The notes under the pieces were generated by a model. That model had not been told where the DNA came from. It did no database searches and was given only the letters and a program-made list of their open reading frames with translations. Of a stretch of DNA of 64,000 nt, positions 13,397 to 63,425 are shown piece by piece. The stretch covers positions 11,544,962-11,608,961 of the forward strand of contig NC_134034.1 in NCBI RefSeq assembly GCF_964204645.1, in the 5' to 3' direction. Source of the DNA: Tubulanus polymorphus. Its lineage: Eukaryota; Animalia; Nemertea. The position numbers were made by a program, and so were the translations under genes. Numbering within the stretch: position 1 is the first letter of the stretch; every line of letters begins with the position of its first letter.

Positions 13397-13637
13397 GAGA
13401 AAAAAGGTCACGATAGGTAGAACACAATATCCGTGTTGACGCGATGAGGAGAGAATCCCACAATGATAATAAAAAGTCCGAAAATGAAACTTCGAGATAG
13501 TAGTTTATTTCAACGTTTCGACTATATCCTAAAGATCCTGAAGATGACTATTAGGATATAGTCGAAACGTTGAAATAAACTACTATCTCGAAGTTTCATT
13601 TTCGGACTTTTTATTATCATTGTGGGAGAAAAAAGGT
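13397..13637. mobile_element. Penelope-like palindromic insertion carrying a hammerhead core, flanked by a 12-bp target-site duplication
   Basis: Perfect inverted arms 13456-13532 / 13551-13627 (77 bp); GAGAAAAAAGGT at 13397-13408 and 13626-13637; CTGAAGA-T-GACTAT..ATAGTC-GAAACGTT at about 13538-13571. Confidence 0.7.
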
Positions 13638-33046: not shown

Positions 33047-36000
33047 TTAATTATAGTCTACGTCGTTATCGTCTATATATTCTTTCTCTTTGTTCATCAA
33101 CGATTGCTTCTTCTTTTTCTTCTTTTTCACGGTGACCTCGTGCATGCCCAAATCCTCGGCACGTTTACGCTTGAAGAAACCGAGCTACAACGACACGCGG
33201 AAAAAAAAAACATCGAATTAAAACTCTACGCATGAAACATCGTTCCCGCAGTTATACGAATTAAAAATTCCCAGGTTTTTCCCAAGTATTTCACGGGTGA
33301 TTTTTCAATTTTCCCATTAGGAAACGAACACATATCGTCATGCAACGGTCAACATTTAAGCGGCGACTGGTTGATAAAGGTGATTTTCAAGGGTAAGCTG
33401 AAGAAAGTTGCCCTTGGCAAATGCAGTATGCGAAATGTAAAGAATTTCCCAAGTATTACCCTGATTTGAGGAAAATTTTTCAAATTCCCAAATATTTCCA
33501 AACTGGGAATTATTATTTCAAAATTCCCAAGTTTTCCCAATTTCCCTGTTCTGTGAGAACCATGATGAAACTTTCAAAATATATCGAATTCAACAAGGGC
33601 GGATCAGGTCCACGGTCCACATCAACACAAAGAACAAGGGATCTTTTTCAGAAAGGGGCATTATAGAGGAATCGAACGCAATTCATAGTATAATAGTAAA
33701 ACAATAGCAGATTTGGGGGGGGGGGTCAGGACCACTGACGTTGCCCTTTTCATCAAGACAGATTGTCAAAACCTGCAAACTTGATGCTCATCCTCACGCA
33801 ATTTGCATCTTTAATGATGTATTTCTTCAAATATATCGCTAACTCCGAAGGTGGGAGCCCGCTAGTGGCCTTTGACTAGGCCGCTTTATCCGAGAGATGC
33901 CTTTTCTTTTCTTCTGGACCCCGCCTTATAACTTCACTAGATCCACCCCTGTTAAAAAGCATTTTCGACCTCCCAACCACCAAGAAAACTCTTTCGACAA
34001 TTCTTCTTCATCAGTACAGAATTGGTATGAAATTGATGGTTCATCGCACGTGGTCACATTAAGATTTTGTAGCCCCAAAATTAAGTAAAATATCACAAAA
34101 ACGAGTCTCATCAATAGATAAATACATCTTAGGTGCTTGACGTTGACTTACCTTCCAACAAACTAATATAATAATGATTAATAATAAAAGACCGGCGCAA
34201 ATAGCTACGATGATGATCCACAGCGGAATATCTTCGGCTTCTTTAGGGGGTATATCAGGATACGCAACGGTCAACGCCTGAAAATTTGTTTAAAAAACAT
34301 CTTTAATCGACACTTTCTTTTGATACGGAATGGACACTTAGATTTTGCCCCGACTATTCCCCGACATGCGCGTTGTTTTCCTTGACTCGATCTGCTAAGA
34401 ATTCGATCAATAAACATCGTCAAATACGTAAGACATAGACGGAAACTGTTTTGATTAATATGAGCGCGATCCAACAATCTCGACAAATTTTCAGGGGCTG
34501 CAGTCGCTCAAAAGTTGGTTAAAGATAACCGGCCGTTAAATACCATAGTAACAATGAAATTTCAATTGTCATCATATCAACTATCCACTGGTTAACTCCA
34601 ACCAACTTTTGAGCAACCGGCCCCTGGACTTTTCCCTGATAAAATCTGTTTCTCTTTTAGCTTTTTAAAAATTTCCCCAAATTTATAAAGGAGAGAAAAT
34701 TCCCTGACTTTTCCCCGATTTTCAGCTCAATGGCGCAACCCTGTATCATTAAGTATTTTTAGATGATATTAAGTCATTAATTAATTAATTTTATCATTAA
34801 TTAATTTATCATGGGATTTTATTCATATCAGATATTGAGTCGACGCGAGTCAGAAACACTTACGCTCGTATAATCGTTAGTCGTATCGTCCTGTTCGATA
34901 TTCAGTCGTTTGTCGATACGAACGATCGCTTTCGAACGAATGTTCACGTAATGCACGTACGGGTAATCCTTTAAATAAAATCAGAATTCTTAGAATTCTA
35001 GCGACTTTCACTAGAAAGCAAAGAGAAACGTACAATCGCGAGAAAAGCTTTCTAAATAATGAACGTGAGATAATTTGAAAATTTCTAAAATTCCACCCCG
35101 GTGCGTGTTGTATAACAGGAACACCGCTATAGTGCATCTACACTGCGGTGCGGTGTATCATTAGTAACTAATATTTCACTATGTTTGACAGGTGCTACCA
35201 TCTTTCAATAGAGATAAGAACTAATTACTAATGAAAACAATACTATGCGATGCGGTGTACACTAGTGAAGTCCATCGCCGATTAATACACCGCACTGTGG
35301 TGTAGACACACCGAACGGGTTAATCAATCGTTTGATCAAATCTTTTCATCTTATAGCTAAGTTGTACCGATTAAGTATCACTAGATGAAGTTATACACAC
35401 GCAGTAGCCACTGGTCTTTGAAACCAATTTGAATCGGACGCATCGAGCTACATCGGATTTCCCGGCGTTGTTTAATCGTTTCTCACCTCGACTAACGTGT
35501 GATTCCATAACCGCGCTCTGATTCTGATTGTCGCCGTCTCTCGCGGTCCTAACTCGGCGATTTGACATTTAAATCGGAAACATTTCGCCGTCCGGTAACC
35601 GCTGGCTCGTTTCTCACAATCCTGAATGAACAAAAAAAAAAAAAATAGTTTCTGCGGTGAAACGCCGTGTGCATGTTCCGACGACAAATTGAGAAACCCG
35701 CACTAAAATAACGAGATAGATGAAGTCCCAAAAGTTTCCTTTAAGCTAATGATTGCTGAAGGTGACTATTAGGTTGTAGTCAAATCTTCGAATGAAAAAA
35801 TTTACAGCTTAAAGGAAACTTTTCGCACTTCATCTTTCTCGTTATATCGGCGTGGCATTCTCAATTTACACATTCCTTGTTACAACGAACTTCAGGGTCC
35901 AGTTCCACAGTTCCGAACTTCAGAGTCAACTCTAACTCACAACTGTGGAACTGGGTCCAGGGCATCAGAAACTCTGATAGTTTGTTACGTATCCGGGATG

Positions 36001-44700: not shown

Positions 44701-47700
44701 AGGAAGCCATCTTTCCTGTAGGGTTACTTGGTGTGTCATAGGGGGATCTATTACGGGTGCCATCTTTTTGTAGATATATTTGAATGATGTCATAGGGAGA
44801 TTTACGGAGACGGCCATCTTTTCTAGAAGTGTCTATCGATCAATTTAATGATGTCATAGGAGGAAATAGAGGTAGCCATCTTTTCTGGAATCATCTAAAG
44901 ATCTATTTGATGATGTCAAAGGGTGATTTATAGACAAAGCTATATTTCTGGACGCATCTTTAAATGTATTTGATGATGTCATAGGGGGATTCATTGAAAG
45001 GTTTGCTTACTCTTTGTCGATATACTTGAAACAGATTTCGAGGTCGAAGCAGATTCTCGATTGTTCCTGACAGTACGGACCGGTATAAACCGGTCGTATC
45101 GCCGCCGGTATCGAGCTGAAGTTCGTACGCAGATTGATCGCCGGTCGCGCGCGCAGCAACGCGGCCGAATTCGACTCGTACGCCCCGACTAACAGATCCG
45201 GGTATCCGTTCAGATCGAGATCCATTCCGCCGGATAGCGAGTATCCGAACGTTTTCATCGCGTTCAGCGTCGTCGTCGATCGGATCCAGTTCGGGATTTT
45301 CATGTCTTCGGCCGTGATTCGTTGCGACGGTTTCGTGTCGAGGCCCGTTTTTTTGCCGTTGAAGATGTAAACGGCTCCGTTTCCTTCGTACGGCGCTCCG
45401 ACCGCTAGATCTACAAACCAACAACAATCGAATCAGTTACGTTCAAAACTTCAAATTTGCAATCGCATCGAGCGGCACAGACGCTTAGATTTAAGTTCTA
45501 AACTCATTTTGGTTCTACAGACAATCTAACGGGGTTCTTTCTGATCTGGGAATCAAAAATTAAATCATAAGATATCCTCAGTGAGGGCCTTGCGCCACTC
45601 GTCACCAGCGAGAACAAGACACCAAAAATTAAAATTCCCTGATTAAATTATAAGATATCCTCAGGGAGGGCTGTTTCAGATATATAAAGTATTTTCGATA
45701 TTAAATGTATGACTTAAAAAATGTATATCAGGGTGACAATTACTTGTGCCACTCGTCACCAGCAAGAACAAGACACCAAAAATTCAAATTCCCCGAATAA
45801 ATTATGAGATATCCTCAGTGAAGGCTGTTTCTAATCAAGAGGTGCCTTGTGTCACTCGTCACCAGCCAAAACAACGAGACACCAAAAATTCCCTGACTTT
45901 TCAAGAAGAGTCCCTGATTTCCCCGCGCTTAAAAAGCCCTTACTTTCCCTGAGGGGTCATTCATTTATTACGTATGCATTAGGGGAGGGGGGAGGGGTCA
46001 GTGCAATTGCGTACTGTAATGCTTAATGTATATGAAAAAATGGCCGCTTTGCGTACCGAGGGGGAGGGGGGTTGAAAAATTCAAATTTTATGCGTACGTA
46101 ATAAATGAATAATCCCTGATTTAACAACTAAATACCAGGGCCCAGTTTCACAGAAAGGTTTAACTCTTAAATCGATTTAATTTCTTGCTTTTTTCGTGAA
46201 ACTAGGGTCCAGTCCAACGATCTGAGACCGTGTTTTTAGGACCGGTCTATTTTACCGTTGTATCCGTCTTTGTTCAAGTCTCCGAGATTGGCGAGGCTGA
46301 ATCCGAATCGCGCTTGTTGACAGTTGAGTTTTTTACATTCGGTCGCCTCCATTTCTCGACTGAGAATCGAAACTGGTTTCGTCGACGAACGAATTCCCTA
46401 AAATTCACACACCACACATTACACAATTAATATTTCATATATAGCCAGTGTCGATCCAAGGAAAAACGAAAAAAAGGTATTTTATTGAAGTGATTAAATT
46501 CATCAAAATTGAAAAGCGATTGTGAATTGATCAAAAATTTTGCGGAGAATATAGAAATATTTTGCAAGGGTTGACCCGGGATACTTCCAAGTGTAGACCT
46601 GAAAATTTGAATGGGCACCTAATTTGAAAAGGCATATTTGGCAATCTAGGACAAAAAAATGTTTCCATATTTTTAGAGGGCATGTTCGAATTTTCACCCT
46701 GTCCACGCCCTAAATCCACCCTTCTTTAGGTTGGTAGTTTCAGTGAATATCCTGTGTGCGCCTGAGTGGGGTAGAGGGGGTAGAGAGGGGGGTTGAAGGG
46801 GTAGATAGGAGGTAGAGGGGTAAAGGGGGTAGAGAGGGGCTGGGGGTAGAGGGGATTGAAAGGGTAAAGGGGGTAGAGAGGGGGTGGGGGTAGAGGGGAT
46901 TGAAAGGGTCGAGGGGGTAGAATGGGGTAGAATGGGGTAGAGAGGGAGTAGAGGGGGTAGATGGGGGTTAATGGGGGTATAGGGGGTAGAGAGGGAGTAA
47001 AGGGGGTAGTGGGAGTAGATGGGGTTAAGGGGGGTATAGGGGGTAAGAGAGGGGGTAGAGGGGGGTCGAGTGTGAACACTTACCGATCCATTGTTCATAT
47101 AAACGAGTATTTTGCCGCCGACGAGTGGAGCCATGTAAAACGGGGCCCCGACGACCAGGTCGTCGTGGCCGTCATTGTTGATATCGATAACGACGACTTC
47201 GTAGCCGAACGACGCGCCGAACTGGTCGCCGGTTAACACCTCGACTTTCTGCAGCATTTTCTCCGTGGTATTCTGAGTGAACAGTATCACCTCGCCGAGG
47301 TTCAACGAGGCGTGAGGAGCGCCCGACGCGTACACGTCATCGATACCCGGTAATAAACGCCCCGTACCGACTGAAAATCCTACAATCATTCATTCAAAAA
47401 AAATGTTTTAAATAAAATTCTATTTTCAGTAGATTTTGGAGTAAGCGTATGACGTGCTTATGACTTAAGGGTTAGTTCAGGGACAGAATGAGTTTAGACT
47501 GGTTTTTAGTTGTTAGATGTTTAGTTAATTGTTTAGTTGTTAAGTTGTTATAGAACCAAGATTGTCTTAGACTGGTCTCAAGTGGCTAAGCAACTGGCCC
47601 ATATATAACTGGGCCAGTTGCTTAGTCAGGGCAAAGACTTGAGACCAGTCTAAGACAATCTTGGTTGTATAACCAATCTAACAACTTAAGACCAGTCTAA

Positions 47701-50700: not shown

Positions 50701-53491
50701 GGGTTATTAGCCGCGATCGCGCAAACAAAGCTCAGGCCTGGTCCGATGTTTTCGGTTGGGGCAAACCGACACAGGGCCTATTTGGGACCCGTGTGAACAG
50801 TTGTTCTGGGCCAAAACGCGCTATAGACACCCGGAGTGACGATTGGTCCCCCAGGATCATTGAAGGGGCTGAGCAGATATATCGGAGATATATCCTACGG
50901 CGGGATTTGATGAACGATGATGAACTATCGATCTATTTTTATAAATACATGCTGTTCATAAACGAACTGAACCCTTTATCAGCCATGACCATGATACCGC
51001 CGTTCCATCATATCTCAAGGAAATAACATTAAAACCCAGGGGCCGGTTGCATAGTCATGGCTAAGACTTAAGACCAGTCTAAGACCAACTTTGTCAGCTA
51101 ATCTAACAACTTAAGACCAGTCTTGAGATTTAAGACCACTTTTGGACTTAAGTCACGACTATGCAACTGGCCCCAGTTTTTTGCGATTTCAAAGTATTCA
51201 AAAACGAAATTGATTTATAAAGAACTAAAATCAAATGTTAAAAGACAATATTTCGATTAAACGCTCGCTCTCTCAAGAGACCAGTGTCGTCGGAAGAAAT
51301 TAAATATCTTCAAATTTGGTTTCGAAAATACCGCTAAAATATAGGCACTGACTGATAGAGGGTTAATTACTAATGGCGAAGAGATACGATAACTTACTTT
51401 CAACACGACCTGTGACAAATTACAACAATTAATATTAGAATCGTTAGCAACAGAATAGTGAAACACAAAACACAAAGACTGTCGTATTAAACACAAAAAA
51501 CAACAACAACAAATATTTGTGACGGCGGAGGGACCCAGATCCACGCGTGACGGACCCAGATCCACGGCAGACGGACCCAGATCCACGCCAGACGGACCCA
51601 GATCCACGGCAGACGGATCCAGATCCACGCCAGACTGACCCAGACCCATGGCAGACGGACCCAGATGATGATTTTGGGTGAATTACAAACGTCTTGTTCT
51701 TGTGCAAACGTATAACAGTCAGTGAGATGGAATGTCTGTGGTCATTGAGTACAGGGCACGGGGAACCCGTCGGTGTCATTGAGTACAGGGCACGGGGAGC
51801 CCGTCGGTGTCATTGAGTACAGGGCACGGGGAGCCCGTCGGTGTCATTGAGTACGGGGCACGGGGAGCCCGTCGGTGTCATTGAGTACGGGGCACGGGGA
51901 GCCCGTCGGTGTCATTGAGTACAGGGCACGGGGAGCCCGTCGGTGTCATTGAGTACAGGGCACGGGGAGCCCGTCGGTGTCATTGAGTACAGGGCACGGG
52001 GAGCCCGTCGGTGTCATTGAGTACAGGGCACGGGGAGTCCGTCGGTGTCATTGAGTACAGGGCACGGGGAGCCCGTCGGTGTCATTGAGTACAGGGCACG
52101 GGGAGCCCGTCGGTGTCATTGAGTACGGGGCACGGGGAGCCCGTCGGTGTCATTGAGTACGGGGCACAGGGAGCCTGTCGGTGTCATTGAGTACAGGGCA
52201 CAGGAAGCCTTGATTTATCATGAATTACATCAATCCTATGCATATATAACAAGCCCTTGTGGAATTGCAGCAGCAACAACAGCAGCAGCAACAGCAGTGG
52301 GGGGATTGGTGGTGATAATCTTTTTCTTTAAAGTCACGTATCGCTCTCTGTCGATTCCACCACTTGGGAACAATTTATTCGCAATTACATTAACATATCA
52401 ACGACAAACGTTTGTATTAAGAATGAATCAGAATTCAGTGATTTGTGAACGAATAGATCTGATACATCTGAGCATCAATCTAATGGTGATGCTGCTGCTG
52501 CTGCGGCTGCTGATTCATCGTAGAAACTAAATCAAATCAAACTCAAACTCCTCACAAACGACGCTACTGAATGATATACGAGATGACCGTGATGAATTGA
52601 AGTTGATTACACAGGAGAAAGCTAACGCGTTGTAGGAGATCGAGAAAATGAAAGGATGCGGTTTCAATTCATGGTTCCTTCTCAACTTTTTAACTAACGT
52701 GGGTTCTAGACGTCAGGGACCATTTGGGAAAAAGTTGGTTAGAGTTAACCAGTAGATAGTTGACATAGTGACTATTGAAACTTCATCATTACATGGTATC
52801 TGGGGCCAGATGGGCAAAAGTTGGTTTGAGTTAACCTAGTTGATAGTTTGACATAGTGACAATTGAAACTTCATTGTCACATGATATTTACCTGGGGCCA
52901 GTTGCTGAAAAGTTGGTTAAAGTTTTTCTTAACCAACCTTTGAGCAACTGATCCCTGATCAATTAAGCTCTTTAACTGACGTGGGATTTAGGGCCAGTTG
53001 GGCAAAAGTTGGTTAGAGTCAACATCAGGGGATAGTTGACATAGTGACAATAAAAGTTCATTGTTACTATCACGGTATTAGTCAGGGGCTGCAGTTGCTC
53101 AAAAGTTGGTTACCTTTAACCAACCTTTGAGCAACTTCAGCCCCTGATCGCTAAAGGATGTCCAATCAAATGGGGGGGCGGGTTCGAGAGGACGATCTCT
53201 ACAGAAAATGAGGAAGGGGTGATGGGGTTTCTGACCACCTATATACAAGATTTCTTCTAGTGATATGATCAGCAAAATCGGGTTATAGGCGTAAATTGAA
53301 CCGAAATCGTCATTATTTTTAGAATATGGATTTGTATTTCCTCGCCGGGGTTAAACGTACCTAAATCATCGATGCGTAGTAGCTGACAGTCGGTGTGTCG
53401 GGCGTGGCTGATCGGACAGCTGTAAACAACTCCCGGACGAACGACTCGTCGCATGAACGTCGAATTACCACGCGGCGCCCCGATTAATATC
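33047..53491 (-). CDS. Integrin alpha subunit, alphaPS1/mew (ITGA3/6/7 laminin-receptor) class, 5'-partial; exons 53491-53361, 49631-49552, 48609-48372, 48201-48100, 47379-47084, 46397-46256, 45410-45011, 44498-44306, 42155-42003, 41905-41823, 41498-41357, 40568-40417, 39710-39627, 39072-38850, 37974-37912, 36628-36479, 35621-35487, 34968-34864, 34277-34152, 33184-33047
   Basis: Phases all match (3136 nt). FG-GAP repeats and DxDxDG loops (DINNDGHDDLVVGAP, DLNKDGYNDLAVGAP, DLDLNGYPDLLVGAY), QWMGVTLRSQGPGKKVLTCGHRY (ITGA6-like), genu CGDDQICHSDL, WPYEVENKRDQGKHLLYL (PS1-like), furin site RNKR, TM helix, GFFKR. No I-domain. Signal-peptide exon not found in the window. Confidence 0.96.
37189..37462. 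mobile_element. Dispersed repeat with CAGTGTTC-like termini
   Basis: Second copy at about 55323-55622 sharing TATCAGCATTGATAGAATATTGGCATCCACTCTG. Confidence 0.6.
37639..37665 (-). CDS. Candidate 27-nt integrin microexon (INERHRLTL)
   Basis: ctactacag|ATA...CTT|gtaagt, phase 0-0, no stop, lies in the variable calf-2 loop before the furin site. Confidence 0.5.
38295..38832. repeat. (AAT)n microsatellite, about 540 bp with single-A interruptions
   Basis: Direct reading; begins about 20 nt from the integrin donor at 38849. Confidence 0.95.
39868..40378. repeat. 40-bp minisatellite (about 11 copies) with a shared flank; inverted 3-copy version at 26380-26572
   Basis: ACTCTCTACCGGCCGCTTCTATCAGGTTTACAGATTACAA units followed by TTCCGGAATAGGTAGAGCGTATTCTGG flank. 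Confidence 0.9.
40880..41148. mobile_element. MITE family D (TCCAGTTCCACAGTT termini) with a nested family E MITE at about 40967-41096
   Basis: Inner element CTG|GGCCGAGTTTCACGAAAAAGTT...AACTTTTTCGTGAAACTGGGCC|CTG interrupts a family D copy; other D copies near 1800, 20755, 35894, 43785, 50066. Confidence 0.75.
44515..44992. repeat. ~55-60-bp tandem/dispersed repeat (TGATGATGTCATAGGGG...GCCATCTT)
   Basis: About 8 copies filling one integrin intron; related clusters at 5560-5810, 23150-23400, 36690-36835. Confidence 0.8.
45953..46116. mobile_element. PIF/Harbinger-type MITE with TGA 3-bp TSD
   Basis: TGA|GGGGTCATTCATTTATTACGTA...TACGTAATAAATGAATAATCCC|TGA. Confidence 0.75.
46765..47066. repeat. 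G-rich (GGGGTAGA-like) tract with G-quadruplex potential on the + strand
   Basis: More than 20 runs of 3 or more G separated by short loops. Confidence 0.8.
51037..51175. mobile_element. Harbinger-type MITE family A (~135 bp), representative copy
   Basis: TIR GGGCCGGTTGCATAGTC / GACTATGCAACTGGCCC with CAG on both sides; other copies near 4586, 9970, 10768, 14516, 14643, 30655, 39126, 41571, 47480, 48680, 48820, 55910, 56810, 57400. Confidence 0.85.
51398..51409 (-). CDS. Candidate 12-nt integrin microexon (DDL-G-RVE-K-PADD instead of DDL-E-PADD)
   Basis: ttgtcacag|GTCGTGTTGAAA|gtaagt, frame-preserving phase 1-1, long upstream GT/pyrimidine tract with TGCTAAC branch-like motif. Confidence 0.6.
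51530..51666. repeat. 21-bp minisatellite
   Basis: GACGGACCCAGATCCACGGCA units. Confidence 0.85.
51741..52205. repeat. 34-bp minisatellite, about 13-14 copies
   Basis: GTCATTGAGTACAGGGCACGGGGAGCCCGTCGGT. Confidence 0.95.
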
Positions 53492-54117
53492 CTAGGAGAG
53501 AAAACAACAACATAGCTTCATTAGTATCCTAGGAAAAAAAAACAACATAGCTTCATTTATATCCTAGGAAAAAACAACGACATAGCTTCATTAGTAACCT
53601 AGGAAAAAAAACAACATAGCTTCATTTATATCCTAGGAAAAAACAACATAAACAAGTTTAAAAAGAGAATTTATTTCAGGAAAACAGGCAATTTAATCAG
53701 TTATTAAAAAGTGTAAACAATGACTGCCCGCATTAAAACAAAACAGGAAAAACCGCGTCAAACATAATATCCTGAATCACGCAGTCCTCAATAAACAGGA
53801 TTTCCTGTCGAGGATCGTACGCAGTTAACACGCGCAGTTCTGTCGGTATTTACAACTCCGACCGCAGCAAGAATTCATTTTAATATTTCATACTGTAATT
53901 ATGGATATAACTCCTATACACCCGTGCACCTCTCCCCTCAAAACATCGTAACAAAATACTCAATTCAATTTATATTTGACAGCACCACTCCTGGTGTCGT
54001 GAAACCATGCGGTGTTGTTACAGAATTCAACTGTCGTTAGCCGATACCCGATAATCCGGATAATTCCAGATCACATAGCGTTCTACGGCTGCTCCGCCGG
54101 TGACCTTGAGAATCTAA

Positions 54118-54802
54118 TAGAACTGGGTTCAGAGTCAACTGTGGAACTGGGTTCAAAGTCAACTGTGGAAGTGGGTTCAGAGTCAACTGTGGAACTGGGT
54201 TCGGAGTCAACTGTAGGACTGGGTTCAGAGTCAACTGTAGGACTGGGTTCAGAGTCAACCGTAGAACTGAGTTCAGAGTCAACTGTAGAACTGGGTTCAG
54301 AGTCAACTGTAGGACTGGGTTCAGAGTCAACTGTGGAACTGGGTTCAGAGTCAACTGTAGGACTGGGTTCAGAGTCAACTGTAGGACTGGGTTCAGAGTC
54401 AACTGTGGAACTGGGTTCAGAGTCAACTGTAGGACTGAGTTCAGAGTCAACCGTAGAACTGAGTTCAGAGTCAACTGTAGAACTGGGTTCAGAGTCAACT
54501 GTGGAACTGGGTTCAGAGTCAACTGTAGGACTGAGTTCAGAGTCAACTGTGGAACTGGGTTCCGAGTCAACTGTGGAACTGGGTTCAGAGTCAACTGTAG
54601 GACTGGGTTCAGAGTCAACTGTAGGACTGGGTTCAGAGTCAACCGTAGAACTGAGTTCAGAGTCAACTGTAGAACTGGGTTCAGAGTCAACTGTGGAACT
54701 GGGTTCAGAGTCAACTGTAGGACTGAGTTCAGAGTCAACTGTAGGACTGGGTTCAGAGTCAACCGTAGAACTGGGTTCAGAGTCAACCGTAGAACTGGGT
54801 TC
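54118..54802. repeat. 24-bp minisatellite derived from a family D MITE terminus
   Basis: GAACTGGGTTCAGAGTCAACTGTG x ~28; explains the spurious ELGSESTV ORFs. Confidence 0.95.
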
Positions 54803-57800
54803 TGAAGAACCACAGAACCACTCGAGCTCGATCCAGTTAAACGACGACACATTGAGATGTGATGGAATGCTAATAACACTCAATTTTCCTTATGTCGGAA
54901 AACATGCGAGCGCAAAAATCCACAAATCGCTCGGCCTCGAACGGCGCGGGCGTGTAATAAACTCCATTATAACAGTGATATTCGACCCAGGGGGATGAGT
55001 TTTTATCAGAACCATTAGAACCATAAGCGGCAGACGCCGAGCGAATCGACGAGATATTTCACTAGGAATCGCTGAAAATCCCTGACGATTCCCTCGACGC
55101 CGCGCGACCCCCCGTGATTAAACGCTATCGTTTCAAAACGCATTTTAAATCGAGTTTGGGAATTAATACATCGAAATAATACATCGAAATGCCGTAAATT
55201 GCGTAGAATTCATCTAAATAGAACAGTCATTAAATCGTAAATAGAATAGTTGAAGTTGTCGAGGCGAAAGTGTCGTTTCAGTAGATCTTGTATAAAACTG
55301 AGAGTCATCATCACTGACAGCTCAGCGTTCCTTCAGTATGCTGCAATGTTAAAAGGGCCGTATTATGACATCGTGGCTGCTGAACTAACAAGGCTTTCGA
55401 TCCACCCAAAAAACAGAGTTTAAGCTCGTAATGTTCTATTTGTCCACATCCACTCGATATATTTCAAAACAATTATCAGCATTGATAGAATATTGGCATC
55501 CACTCTGGTCGGGACAGCAGATATTTTATAAAGGGTTGGCTGACGATTTTAAAGAGGGGTGGTTGTGAAAATGAAAGAGGTGTGGCCGCCTCTCTAAAAC
55601 CTGTAGTGGATTGAGAACACTAGAATCGATAAGAGCTATATTTTCATAGCTGTTTCTCAAGCAGAACGAACGGACTAAACAGACTGACCGGACAGACGAC
55701 TATAATAGACTATAATGGACTAGACTAGGACGGTTGGTTATTACCCGTCTCTCAATAATAATACGCAATCATGTATGATTATGTGATTTTTGGTAGAGTG
55801 TCTTCACGCATGCGAAGATCTATAAACAGCCGATCGGTCGGTCCGGTTATCATTTCCCCCCCCCCCCCGGGTTCCTCCTGATCAAATCGACCGGTCTTCG
55901 TAAATCTGGGGTAAGTAGTCAGACTTAAGACCGGTCTAACACCGATTTAGTATCATAGCCAACATAACAACTTAAGACCAATCTTAAGATTCAAGACCAC
56001 TTTTGCAACTGTGCAACTGGGTCATTCTACACGGGGTATCGGGTTTTTAAGCTGATTTGAGTTTGACGAAAGCATTTTGGACCGCGTCCTTGAATTGGCC
56101 CGGCCTAGAATAGATACTTAAGCAGTTTAAACCACGTCCTTGAATTGGATTTTAGTATAGAACTAGAACAGATGTAATGTCATATAAAATCCGATAACTG
56201 GCTCTCAATCTGCGGGTGTCTGAGTCAGCAATCCGGATTTTTACTGAACCGCTACATAAAGAATCGGCGCTATATAAACACTGTATACTGTAATATCATC
56301 TGACATATGAGAGATGAGACGATGAGGGGGGAGTGGAGAGAAGGGAGAGAGTGAGAGGGGGTGAGAAGAGACAGAGTATGAAGATGAAGAGAGAGAGAGA
56401 GAGCAATTACATTATTCATAACCCAGCACCGGCGTGCGTAGTCGTTTGTGAGAGTGGTTAAAAATATATAGTTAAGAGTTTTTTTGAGTTGTACGTTCAA
56501 TATCTACAGGAAACTAGTGCACGCATGCACGCGTGCGTGCGGAAATAGGGTGGCTCCATGCTGCGTGTATTTTAGATTGAGTCTTACTATAAACATCAAC
56601 CCTTGCGTACTCTTAAACATCGACATATTTTTCCGGTTACGCATTATTTGCAATAAACCGAAGATGTTTTTTCGAGTCAAGATTCGACGAGATTTTCGCC
56701 TTGTTTTGAGGGTTCTAAAATCTATCGTAGTAATCAGCACGAGTCCATGGTCCAGTTTTTTATAGCAAAATCATGATTACTTACTTATGCGGAGCTTTCA
56801 TTTCCCCCAAAAATGGTCCTAAGACTGGTTGAAAGTTGTTATATTGGCTATAGAACTAAAATGGTCTTAGACTGGTCTTAAGTCTAAGCCTTGACTGTGA
56901 ATTAGCCCCGTCAATTGGTCACGTGACTTAAGTCCCAAGTGGTCTTAAATCTTAACACAGGTCTTAAGTTGGTAGATTTGCTAACGAACTTGAAGTTGGT
57001 CTCGGCCCGGTCTCAAATCTAAGCAACATGGCCCCAGGACTGAAGAAATCAAACTGGAGTCGTGTTTTTCACCAAATTTCTAAAATCAGAATTTTTTTGT
57101 TGGCAAAAGTTTGATTCATTGATTTTAGTCATTTTTGTTGTCACTGTAAAGATCAGATTTTTTTAGATCACGCAGTGGTGTTTGGCATGCCGTTGGTGTG
57201 AGAAGAGTAGATCGCAAACATTCTCTTTGCTCTCTCTCTCGGCAGACGGATTAATGCGTCGAGATAAGAGCTAAATAAACTCCGTTCCGACTGTTCAGAA
57301 AATACGGGCTGAGATTGAGCAAGAATCATAGGAAAAAATCGAGGGATTTTTCTATCAGGTTTTTTGTCCATATAGTCACAACTAACATCAGCAACAAGCC
57401 CGAAGACCATCTTAGTTCAAATTTCCAAGACCAGTCTAAGACCATCTTAGCCACTCTAACAACCTTACACCAATCTAAGCTCATTTTAGTTCTCTAAACA
57501 AGCTAACAGCTTAAGAACAGTTTAAGGTTATTTTGGTTCTATAGCCGATCTAACAACTTAACACCAGCCCAAGACCACCTTAGTTCTGCGAACAATGTTA
57601 CAAGATGCTACGACCACTTTTGGGCTTAGGCCTCAAATGGAACCGGCCGCAAAATCCAGATTTAAATCCAGTCCAAGCTCAGTTTACGTATCAAATAGAT
57701 ATCATAGAGGGGTATGTGGAGGTGGTGTTCATTTCCAAAAAAATTTCATTCATCAATCAGTCATGATGATGTCATAGGGGGATGATTAAGGATGGCAGCG

Positions 57801-59120: not shown

Positions 59121-60553
59121 TGGATATAGGTAATATCAGAGACGTACAGACTGATGACTACACGCACGAACTGAGAGAAAGTTCAAGAATGTTTCAACAA
59201 GGTCATCTCTCTATCCGCCGCCGTACCTCCAGCCTCACAGTTTACAACACACCGTGATGAAAATAGTGCCGGCATTCAAAAAATAGCAGCAGAAACCGTG
59301 AAATATGAAATCAACGATAGACTATGTGAACGAAACGGAAATCATTGAGATAAATCTTGAGCTGTTTCATCCTCCTCAAGGAAACACATTGACTGTGAAC
59401 ATGTTTTTTTCCCCGTTAACTACTGTGCATAAGATCGTTAGCATTAAAGTTAATTAAGATAAGGTTAATGAAGTACTAAAACTGGCAGTAGTACTGGTAC
59501 ACTCTCTGCAGGAATGTATGCTTTGTCAACTTCATACAAAGAGTTTTAATATTGTTTATGTTGATCTAGTCAGGCCCCAAACTAATCATTCCTCATTCAG
59601 GTCAAATCATAAATTACCAGATAACATTTCATGAAACAACAGACAGCGCGACAGATAGGACACTAATTCAGTAGTTATCAGCCGCAACCGGAAACCGCTA
59701 CTGGCAGGTGAGGTCAAGGGTGCATCTAATTTCATCATCGGGCGAGCATTTATCCAAAACAATTCTTTCCTCTCAATCGCAAAAATACAACGGCAACAAA
59801 AAAGTGTTCAGGGGGGGGGGGGGCAGATCCAGGAACTCAGAATGCAGGGTCCTAAACTTTCTAGGCATAAAGAGGGACCCGAAAGGCAAGAAAAAGGGTT
59901 TCAGGGACTCCCCCTAAAAAATTTGAAAAAAAATGTATCATTTTCTGAGCGATTCTAAAACGAAATGACCCGCATAAAAAACCTGGGCAAAGAATAAAAT
60001 CCTAATTTCATTATCATCGCAATTTTGACTAGGCCTAGCGTTGAATAGAATAAGACGAATTCAAATATCTTCGTTAAATCTGTAGAATAAGATGAATTCA
60101 ATGAAATATCTTTCTTAAATCTATCTGCGTCGCTCACAGGGGCATTTCTGAAGTAAGGATACAGAATGTAGTACAACTGGATCTGGTATAAACAGCAGCG
60201 GTGCTGGTTTTTTTTTCTGTGAAGTAATGAATGAAATATTCTCGTTTCCTCGGTTTATAGTGAAACACATGCATAAAATAGTTTATAGCAGCAGCCGTTT
60301 ATACGCGAAGAGTGCTTCATACAGCGCGATGTATTATTGTCATCTCGAAATCGGATAACTTTATATTCTGATTTCCCGAGTGAAGCACGTTTTTAAATTG
60401 TTCGTAAAACTGGCTTCTGAATCCGTTGAGTTGTTACCGAATAACTGCGCCCTAAACAGGCTTTACGATTGGAGAGCTTTAACAACCATCGATGAAATAC
60501 TCCCTGAGAGATGATATAAAATCCCTGCAAAGATTTGAAAGAGTCTGAAATGT

Positions 60554-61780
60554 TTCCTTGAGCTAGTGTAGTTTATTCAACGTTTCGACTTTATCCTAAT
60601 AGTCATCTTCAGGAATACAGTATTCCTTGAGCTAGTGTAGTTTATTCAACGTTTCGACTATATTCTAATAGTCATCTTCAGGAATACTGTATTCCTTGAG
60701 CTAGTGTAGTTTATTCAACGTTTCGACTATATTCTAATAGTCATCTTCAGGAATACTGTATTCATTGAGCTAGTGTAGTTTATTCAACGTTTCGACTTTA
60801 TCCTAATAGTCATCTTCAGGAATACTGTATTCCTTGAGCTAGTAGCTTATTCAACGTTTCGACTATATCCTAATAGTCATCTTCAGGAATACTGTATTCC
60901 CTGAGCTAGTGTAGTTTATTCAATGTTTCGACTATATCCTAATAGTCATCTTCAGGAATACTGTATTCCTTGAGCTAGTGTAGTTTATTCAACGTTTCGA
61001 CTTTATCCTAATAGTCATCTTCAGGAATACTGTATTCCTTGAGCTAGTAGCTTATTCAACGTTTCGACTATATCCTAATAGTCATCTTCAGGAATACTGT
61101 ATTCCCTGAGCTAGTAGTTTATTCAACGTTGACTATATCCTAATAGTCATCTTCAGGAATACTGTATTCCTTGATCTAGTGTAGTTTATTCAATGTTTCG
61201 ACTATATTCTAATAGTCATCTTCAGGAATACTGTATTCCTTGAACTAGTGTAGTTTATTCAACGTTTCGACTTTATCCTAATAGTCATCTTCAGGAATAC
61301 TGTATTCCTTGAGCTAGTAGCTTATTCAACGTTTCGACTATATCCTAATAGTCATCTTCAGGAATACTGTATTCCCTGAGCTAGTGTAGTTTATTCAATG
61401 TTTCGACTATATTCTAATAGTCATCTTCAGGAATACTGTATTCCCTGAGCTAGTAGTTTATTCAACGTTGACTATATCCTAATAGTCATCTTCAGGAATA
61501 CTGTATTCCTTGATCTAGTGTAGTTTATTCAATGTTTCGACTATATTCTAATAGTCATCTTCAGGAATACTGTATTCCCTGAGCTAGTAGTCTATTCAAC
61601 GTTGACTATATCCTAATAGTCATCTTCAGGAATACTGTATTCCTTGATCTAGTGTAGTTTATTCAATGTTTCGACTATATTCTAATAGTCATCTTCAAGA
61701 ATACTGTATTCCTTGAGCTAGTAGTTAATTCAACGTTTCGACTATAACATTAAGTCATCTTCAGGAATACAGTATTCCTT
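60554..61780 (-). ncRNA. Tandem array (18 x ~68 nt) of minimal type I hammerhead ribozyme-like units
   Basis: Minus-strand unit UAUUC-CUGAAGA-U-GACUAU(UAGGAU)AUAGUC-GAAA-CG-UU-GAAUA: helix I, conserved core, helix II, palindromic ACGU helix III. Confidence 0.7.
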
Positions 61781-62887
61781 AGGATAATTAGGATTAAGTT
61801 AAGTTAAATAAACCACAGCATCAGGAAACCTTTTTCGAATACCCTATAGGCCCATTGGAACGCTTGAATTTTGATTCCGAAAAATATTTGAAACGAAAAC
61901 TATTTTTCGGGATAAAACTCGACCATGAACGACCGGGTCTCAGGCGTAAATATAGATATTCGTTTGCGTGAATATTTATTGATAATATTTGAGAGGTCGA
62001 TATAATAGGGACCCATGAGCCGCGAGATAAATATTGAAATATCGAAAAATAAACAAAACTCAAATCACGGGAAATTAAACTAGAATCGCGCGTGTCGTGT
62101 CATACAACAAATGGCTGGTGAATTTCTATGAGTAAAAATGACTTTAATTCGAAAATGCTGAATTTCTAGTAAAACCGTTTAAAATGTGGAATTTCTTGTT
62201 AAAACCATAAAATAGGTCTCTCGTTTTCTTAAGAGTTTCTATTCAACGTGTTTCTATTCCTGGCTTTTCTAAAAACCAACCAACACTTCGAAAACCGTAG
62301 CTCAAGGCTCCCATACTAATAATGGAACATGGTTCCTACAGATAATTTTTTACGGAGATGATTTCCAGAACTTTAGGGGTATTTTAGGGGCCTGAGGTTC
62401 AAAAGCCAGAATTTTAGGGTATTTCTTCCCTAAAAAATGGAATTCCGGAATTTTAGGGTATTTTAGGAATTTTAGGGGCTGTAGGAACCATGTGGAACTG
62501 CAGAAAGAATTTCTATGAATCAGAATTTTCCTTATTGTTTTTCTTAAAAACAGAAAAACTTCAAGAAGTTACGAGCGAAAACGTCAATGTACAGACAGTA
62601 TAGCGCGTACAGCGGTGAAGTATGAAATGGCACAGTGGCCTATTAAACCAGAACACAATAGATCAGGTCTCTCCTCTACCCTAGGCTAATTCAGTACAGA
62701 CATTTTTTTACCTCAACTATTTCCTTCCTAAAATAGAAGAGAGAAAATTTTAAACTACATACACAACGACGGCGTAGAGATCGTACTATAAGCGCAGCCA
62801 GACAACTGGCTTAAAAACTGTTTTTAACTATCTTTGTAAGAAAATTGGGCTCAGTCTAGTCTGATTATCCAGAATCAAATCTTAATC

Positions 62888-63425
62888 GAACCCACACAAC
62901 TGTGGAACCGGGTTCAAGGTGAAATCAAACCCACAACTGTGGAACTGGATCCAGAGTCAATTTAACCTACACAACTGTGGAACTGGATCCAGGGTCAAAT
63001 CAAACCCACACAACTGTGGAACTGGATCCAGAGTCAAACTAAACCCACAAAACTGTGGAACTGGGTTTAGAGTCAAATTAAACCCACACAACTGTGGAAC
63101 TGGATCCAGAGTCAAATCAAACCCACACAACTGTGGAACTGGGTCCAGAGTCAAACTAAATCCACAAAACTGTGGAACTGGGTTTAGAGTCAAATTAAAC
63201 CCACACAACTGTGGAACTGGATCTTGAATCAAATCAAATCCACATGAATGTGGAACCTCGATCCAGAGGCAAATTAAACCCAAACAACTGTGGAACTGGG
63301 TTCAGAGACAAATTGAACCCCCACAAATGTGGGACTGGACTCAACTGGAGACAATAAGCCACACAACTGTCAAATTAAACCCACGCGACTGTGGAACTGG
63401 GCTCGCCATACAACTGTGGAAGTGG
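62888..63425. repeat. 39-bp minisatellite derived from a family D MITE terminus
   Basis: AACCCACACAACTGTGGAACTGGATCCAGAGTCAAATTA-like units. Confidence 0.9.

Follow-up and report, generated by a model that had tools for sequence, protein, structure and literature searches.

A tandem array of minimal hammerhead motifs in an integrin alpha intron of Tubulanus polymorphus, probably a decayed satellite derived from a Penelope-like element

The closest described relatives of the repeat reported here are the minimal hammerhead ribozymes of Penelope-like elements (PMC4209133; Lunse, Weinberg & Breaker, RNA Biol, as cited in PMC6765202), whose four defining features are covariation, an unpaired base inserted between positions 9 and 10.1, the pairing of G10.1 with C11.1, and a palindrome at 15.2-16.2 (PMC4209133). 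Topologically, these are type I ribozymes: helix I is short and open, helix II is long, and helix III has shrunk to a 4-nt palindrome, so that they are active only as dimers. They reside in the terminal repeat of elements with a reverse transcriptase (RT) and a GIY-YIG domain and occur in many dispersed single and head-to-head copies. All these traits recur in the repeat of T. polymorphus, in which helix I has 5 bp and helix II has 6 bp and which has the same unpaired base between A9 and G10.1, followed by the same G10.1-C11.1 pair. Two features set it apart from the ribozymes described before: the 61- to 63-nt ribozyme segment has itself been amplified, into head-to-tail arrays of 7 to 36 units of 69 nt, and the units are joined by a new palindromic junction, which is absent from the parent and is predicted to block helix I.

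A similar comparison can be made with the animal non-LTR retrozymes (PMC7229834; 10.64898/2026.07.22.740005), which derive from Penelope terminal repeats (Li, Clavereau & Pollet preprint, 10.64898/2026.07.22.740005). Like them, the repeat is arranged in tandem with a single type I hammerhead in each unit, is noncoding and low in GC, originates from a Penelope terminal repeat, and shares its genome with autonomous Penelope elements. It differs from them in having the minimal ribozyme variant, devoid of loop-loop contacts, in the presence of one Penelope tail per array, and in being known from DNA rather than from RNA circles. The preliminary description of the locus considered its unit much shorter than the 150- to 400-nt units of known retrozymes. 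This holds for the classical size, since 65 to 69 nt is below the usual 170 to 400 nt and outside the classical definition of approximately 150 to 450 nt, but not for the group as a whole, as consensus lengths of non-LTR retrozyme families range from 51 to 972 bp, which includes 69 nt (10.64898/2026.07.22.740005). Retrozyme arrays of up to 300 units have been reported in an insect (10.64898/2026.07.22.740005). A 167-nt satellite of the same genome (L076) is closer to the classical retrozyme form. Finally, the hammerhead satellites of the newt, the cave cricket, and Schistosoma (Sm-alpha) are likewise repetitive DNA with dimer-dependent type I hammerheads in the transcripts, but their units are 330 to 500 nt long and their cleavage has been demonstrated, whereas the unit studied here is of 69 nt and its ribozyme is a predicted one. 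The array therefore has a place in a known class and can be called either a minimal-hammerhead satellite of Penelope origin or a short non-LTR retrozyme.

The window, i.e., the whole stretch of DNA analyzed, comprises 64,000 nt of contig NC_134034.1 (positions 11,544,962 to 11,608,961). Tandem Repeats Finder called a repeat at 60554-61780 of the window with a period of 69, 18.1 copies, and 91% matches, and additionally reported higher-order periods of 205 and 270 for it. Splitting of the minus strand at the conserved core resolved the array (60556-61780, minus strand) into 18 units of 65 to 69 nt, each composed of a minimal Penelope-type hammerhead motif and a linker of approximately 25 nt. 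In a canonical unit, read on the minus strand, helix I is formed by UAUUC and GAAUA (5 bp), the core sequence CUGAAGA is followed by one extra U, helix II consists of GACUAU and AUAGUC (6 bp), and the GAAA after helix II leads into ACGU, U17, and the next G1.1, which makes GUU the predicted cleavage triplet. The extra U between A9 and G10.1 is found in every unit of the window, and the junction between units is the palindrome GGAAUACAGUAUUCC.

The units differ in how well they preserve this arrangement. Five of the 18 are canonical (units 7, 11, 14, 16, and 17), and four others (units 8, 12, 15, and 18) deviate by an A.A mismatch in the fifth pair of helix II, a distal position that leaves the 4 bp next to the core intact. 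Another five (units 2, 4, 6, 9, and 13) have ACAU instead of ACGU, with C3 changed to U as well in unit 2, three (units 3, 5, and 10) have GAAA shortened to AA, and unit 1 is divergent. The helix III 4-mer is ACGU in 13 units and the nonpalindromic ACAU in 5, and a hammerhead descriptor matched 14 of the 18 units. Apart from the units with GAAA lost and the one with C3 altered, the array thus shows the catalytic core expected of the Penelope type, CUGANGA and GAAA together with A15.1, U16.1, and a base other than G at position 17. Both the 18-copy array of approximately 68-nt units given in the preliminary description and its tally of variants (5 intact, 4 with the mismatch, 5 with ACAU, and 3 without GAAA) were reproduced, the latter exactly. 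An Rfam scan of 59500-63000 returned no family at an E value of ≤1, Hammerhead_1 (RF00163) included, as is to be expected given that the Rfam hammerhead models need a closed helix III. Assembled contigs of two runs from one study confirmed both junctions of the array with its flanks, showed that the summed word depth over it is very high, and gave no presence/absence allele.

Judged by its sequence, the motif in the window represents the ribozyme that a resident Penelope-like element carries. A genome-wide search for its exact 35-nt core gave 1292 occurrences (671 forward and 621 reverse), many of the copies forming close head-to-head pairs, compared with 0 for a reversed control. An identical core is present once per 2856-nt unit in tandem intact Penelope-like elements on C12 (L073) and near C2:31.46 Mb. 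On C12, it sits between tandem open reading frames (ORFs) of 802 aa which bear RVT_1 and GIY-YIG (Pfam) and resemble arthropod Penelope clusters; a Pfam scan of the genome for GIY-YIG gave approximately 150 matches, many of them in open frames of 817 to 841 aa. The identity with the ribozyme of intact elements, together with the 1292 occurrences against none for the control, shows that the motif did not arise by chance.

Three further element families of the same genome have a hammerhead of the same architecture built with different helices (GGCUAA/UUAGCC, GGCUAAUG/CAUUAGCC, and GGGUGGU/ACCACCC) and with ACGU, ACAU, or AUAU as helix III. Three of the four families have U as the additional base that follows A9 and one has A, and the G10.1-C11.1 pair is invariant. 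In an alignment of five sequences, 94.5% of the cells were paired, against 29 to 42% for slid partners, and both sides had changed in 8 of 11 pairs across the element families. Because the sequences were picked with a pairing/structure descriptor, this signal is partly built in, and it is the constant position beside the Penelope ORFs that gives support independent of the descriptor. The assignment to the Penelope-type minimal type I hammerheads with a palindromic helix III, made in the preliminary description, is thus supported by the core being identical to that of the ribozyme in an intact Penelope-like element and by the presence of the hallmarks of the group.

Traces of the same elements are found elsewhere in the window. 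At 13408-13627 lies a head-to-head pair of Penelope 3' ends, each comprising the ribozyme part and the tail, which is 97.6 to 97.8% identical to the intact C12 element, is joined near the ribozyme core, and looks like a recent insertion remnant. A weak (78%) remnant of the Penelope ribozyme segment is present at 35746-35796.

A genome-wide comparison revealed both other arrays of the same satellite and their link to Penelope termini, two points on which the preliminary description had looked for an answer. A 207-nt query gave 237 matches and 706 first-look candidates and located the satellite on at least 9 contigs, and arrays of 7 to 36 units were found at more than 20 loci. In the unit of the C12 Penelope-like element, the counterpart of the 69-nt repeat unit is the segment at positions 149-209. 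The upstream flanks of the arrays are unrelated to one another, while downstream approximately 75 to 90 nt are conserved before the loci diverge. Every sampled array closes with one copy of the 3' tail of the Penelope-like element; this tail can be aligned with the 3' end of the autonomous element, and the alignment extends to where individual copies of that element cease to match one another. In the window, this single tail occupies 60482-60555 on the minus strand; it starts with AAACATTTCAG and ends in ...TTTCATCGATGGTTGT, has an internal deletion relative to the other copies, and is followed by sequence unique to the locus. Just upstream of approximately 9 of 21 arrays there are inverted fragments of the ribozyme; a head-to-head arrangement has been described for Penelope insertions (PMC4209133).

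The tail occurs in two subtypes, and that of the window is common to the 167-nt satellite on C8. The unit of that satellite consists of the ribozyme unit plus the Penelope tail; at C8:372-374 kb (L076 1105-2917) it is present in 10.9 copies with 98% matches, and it is also found at many other C8 loci. The consensus at C8:372-374 kb has G in place of C11.1, which means that the G10.1-C11.1 pair is disrupted in most units of this locus.

No remnant of a Penelope ORF was detected by tblastn in the window copy, which makes this copy a nonautonomous Penelope derivative, and inspection of the flanks of the window copy and the other arrays revealed no convincing direct repeat that would represent a target-site duplication. 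The 5' ends cluster in unit phase: among 22 arrays, 17 ends fall inside a 12-nt interval at the unit junction, and five of these, that of the window copy included, coincide to the nucleotide with the 5' edge of the junction palindrome. Such clustering is not accounted for by a simple random 5' truncation, nor is the single tail per array accounted for by pure rolling circle on 69-nt circles. One possibility is that the phased starts were caused by template switching of the reverse transcriptase at a defined 5' end of the RNA.

We consider it likely that the array is a nonautonomous Penelope-derived insertion of the non-LTR-retrozyme kind, which was dispersed with a 3' tail and has since decayed in intron 1 of an integrin alpha gene, and that its cleavage is absent or inefficient. 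According to this proposal, a 61- to 63-nt segment of the terminal repeat of the element, including the dimer-type hammerhead, would have become the 69-nt tandem unit, and multi-unit copies ending in the 3' tail of the element would have spread through the genome, most likely, we infer, through priming in the tail by the reverse transcriptase of Penelope. The copy in the integrin alpha intron would later have expanded and decayed in place through unequal crossing-over. In a multi-unit RNA, the palindromic junctions would pair together and sequester the 5' strand of helix I, making cleavage absent or inefficient, and the intron carrying the array would probably simply be spliced out. The stand-alone "ultra-minimal retrozyme" suggested in the preliminary description found no support, since each array has a single Penelope tail and is one of many dispersed copies.

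Comparison of the window copy with its relatives revealed its particular history. It is the second most diverged of 22 arrays, with 1.9 mismatches per unit, while most arrays have 0.3 to 1.0, and it holds all the 65- and 67-nt units, all the units with GAAA lost, and 5 of the 6 ACAU units of the sample. Its defective variants are arranged within 205/270-nt higher-order repeats. The confinement of the variants to this copy and their arrangement in higher-order repeats indicate that defective units were amplified in place, at the DNA level, regardless of the integrity of the ribozyme.

The satellite as a whole presents a different picture, on which an alternative view of the arrays could be based. 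The 297 units from the 22 arrays are very homogeneous, with 0 to 4% variation per site and the helix II mismatch position (A in 150, T in 129) as the sole exception, and the intact ones make up 71% when units with the distal helix II mismatch are counted among them. A young, homogeneous family in dispersed arrays, most of its units intact and its motif a genuine, covarying ribozyme family, is what could be expected if ACGU double hammerheads between neighboring units released monomers of approximately 69 nt which were then converted to circles and used by the Penelope reverse transcriptase to seed arrays, i.e., if the repeat were an active ultra-small retrozyme; a pathway through circular RNA has been suggested for Penelope elements (PMC4209133) and demonstrated for animal retrozymes of 170 to 400 nt (PMC7229834). 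We nevertheless regard this as unlikely. A circle made of the unit only cannot supply the single 3' tail that ends every array, and the 5' ends of the arrays are not at the cleavage site. Moreover, no selection on the ribozyme is visible among the 297 units, in which the core and the linker vary equally, the satellite family being too young for selection to show.

The predicted folding of the transcripts also speaks against an active retrozyme. A lone unit has the hammerhead fold as its minimum-energy structure, but this fold is no more stable than that of shuffled sequences (z = -0.28). In predicted transcripts of three and four units, helix II forms with a probability of approximately 0.99 (0.38 with the A.A mismatch), while the equilibrium probability of helix I is approximately 0, owing to the palindromic junctions GGAAUACAGUAUUCC, which form hairpins or pair mutually. 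The competition of a junction hairpin with helix I, proposed in the preliminary description, is thereby supported in silico. Forcing helices I and II in four units was predicted to require +30.8 kcal/mol, compared with +3.6 in the context of the parental element, which does not contain the junction palindrome, and the palindrome is predicted to disfavor helix I by approximately 7.7 kcal/mol per unit; these values describe folding at equilibrium, which leaves out cotranscriptional folding, tertiary contacts, and protein chaperones. The 4-bp intermolecular helix III is also weak, with only approximately -1.7 kcal/mol predicted for ACGU/ACGU and +0.9 or worse when ACAU is involved.

The published activity of ribozymes of this type is low. 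The cleavage of Penelope hammerheads is poor even in dimers or trimers (PMC4209133). It is dispensable for in vitro transposition, and in Anolis RNA-seq ends are absent at the site (PMC11167929). Of nine Xenopus retrozyme dimers, eight stayed uncleaved. The disfavored helix I, the degeneracy of the window copy, and the poor activity reported for related ribozymes all argue against efficient cleavage, and efficient cutting of the integrin pre-mRNA is therefore unlikely. Some cleavage would be possible, given the presence of five canonical units and four that have the distal mismatch only.

A more elaborate scheme, to which we assign a slim chance, would make the 69-nt unit the smallest working retrozyme. 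In that case, 69-nt RNAs set free through double hammerheads of adjacent units would circularize, the palindromic junction would act as a switch keeping most multimers uncut, and the reverse transcriptase would jump from a tail-bearing RNA to monomers or circles and in this way build arrays ending in a single tail.

The position of the array relative to the integrin alpha gene was determined by homology. An integrin alpha exon whose translation reads ILIGAP...GVVYSCPI...C..L lies 3' of the array on the minus strand, at 53269-53510 with an approximate upstream boundary, and a profile search gave FG-GAP Pfam matches on the same strand at 47102-47209 and 45172-45249; PF08441 (Integrin_A_Ig_1) had no match in the window. 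A motif search of the window itself did not reveal exon 1, which was found in the 10 kb past the end of the window, 521 to 676 nt beyond the last position on the minus strand, as an open frame encoding a signal peptide and then FNLDTHIP...YFGFSVAEH. With exon 1 past the end of the window and the next exon at approximately 53.3 to 53.5 kb, the array would be situated in intron 1, in the sense orientation, and the intron would be approximately 11 kb long. This agrees with the preliminary description, which had placed the array sense to the integrin pre-mRNA and in intron 1. In the sense orientation, the array is expected to be transcribed as part of the intron. Other repeats are present in this region: a tandem array at 62884-63339 with a period of 39/117 nt, 11.6 copies, and 82 to 88% matches; a 24-nt repeat in intron 1 at 54012-54998, with GSESTVEL-like open frames on both strands; and, also in intron 1, a short tandem repeat directly upstream of the second exon, at approximately 53520-53800.

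The sense orientation inside intron 1 would be compatible with an exploitation of the ribozyme by the host, in which cutting of the nascent integrin alpha pre-mRNA in the intron would tune the expression of the gene, and conserved intronic hammerheads of amniotes are among the cases cited in PMC7229834 (reference 22 therein). We find such a role very improbable here. The satellite is present at dozens of unrelated loci and shows no strand bias across the genome (671 forward, 621 reverse), and the window copy is decaying, with GAAA or helix III altered in 8 of its 18 units, one of which has a changed C3 as well, and with these defective units amplified. In addition, Xenopus retrozymes are depleted from introns, which suggests a cost rather than a use (10.64898/2026.07.22.740005). 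Most likely, the array is a neutral, inert passenger in intron 1 of the integrin alpha gene.

The idea that the repeat is ordinary satellite DNA with a merely coincidental likeness to a hammerhead, which could draw on the lack of an Rfam match and on a monomer fold no more stable than that of shuffled sequences (z = -0.28), has next to nothing left in its favor and is refuted by the identity of the core with the ribozyme that intact Penelope elements carry in their terminal repeat, by the covariation over four element families that keep all the hallmarks, and by the 1292 occurrences against 0 for the reversed-pattern control.

The array is a clean example of the terminal ribozyme segment of a Penelope-like element turning into a satellite. 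A single genome contains the 69-nt hammerhead repeat with the tail of the element, its 167-nt sister satellite, and intact autonomous elements, and this set supports the recent proposal that animal retrozymes are nonautonomous Penelope derivatives. It also offers a compact system in which to study cleavage by dimer-type minimal hammerheads in vivo and the effect of the junction palindrome.
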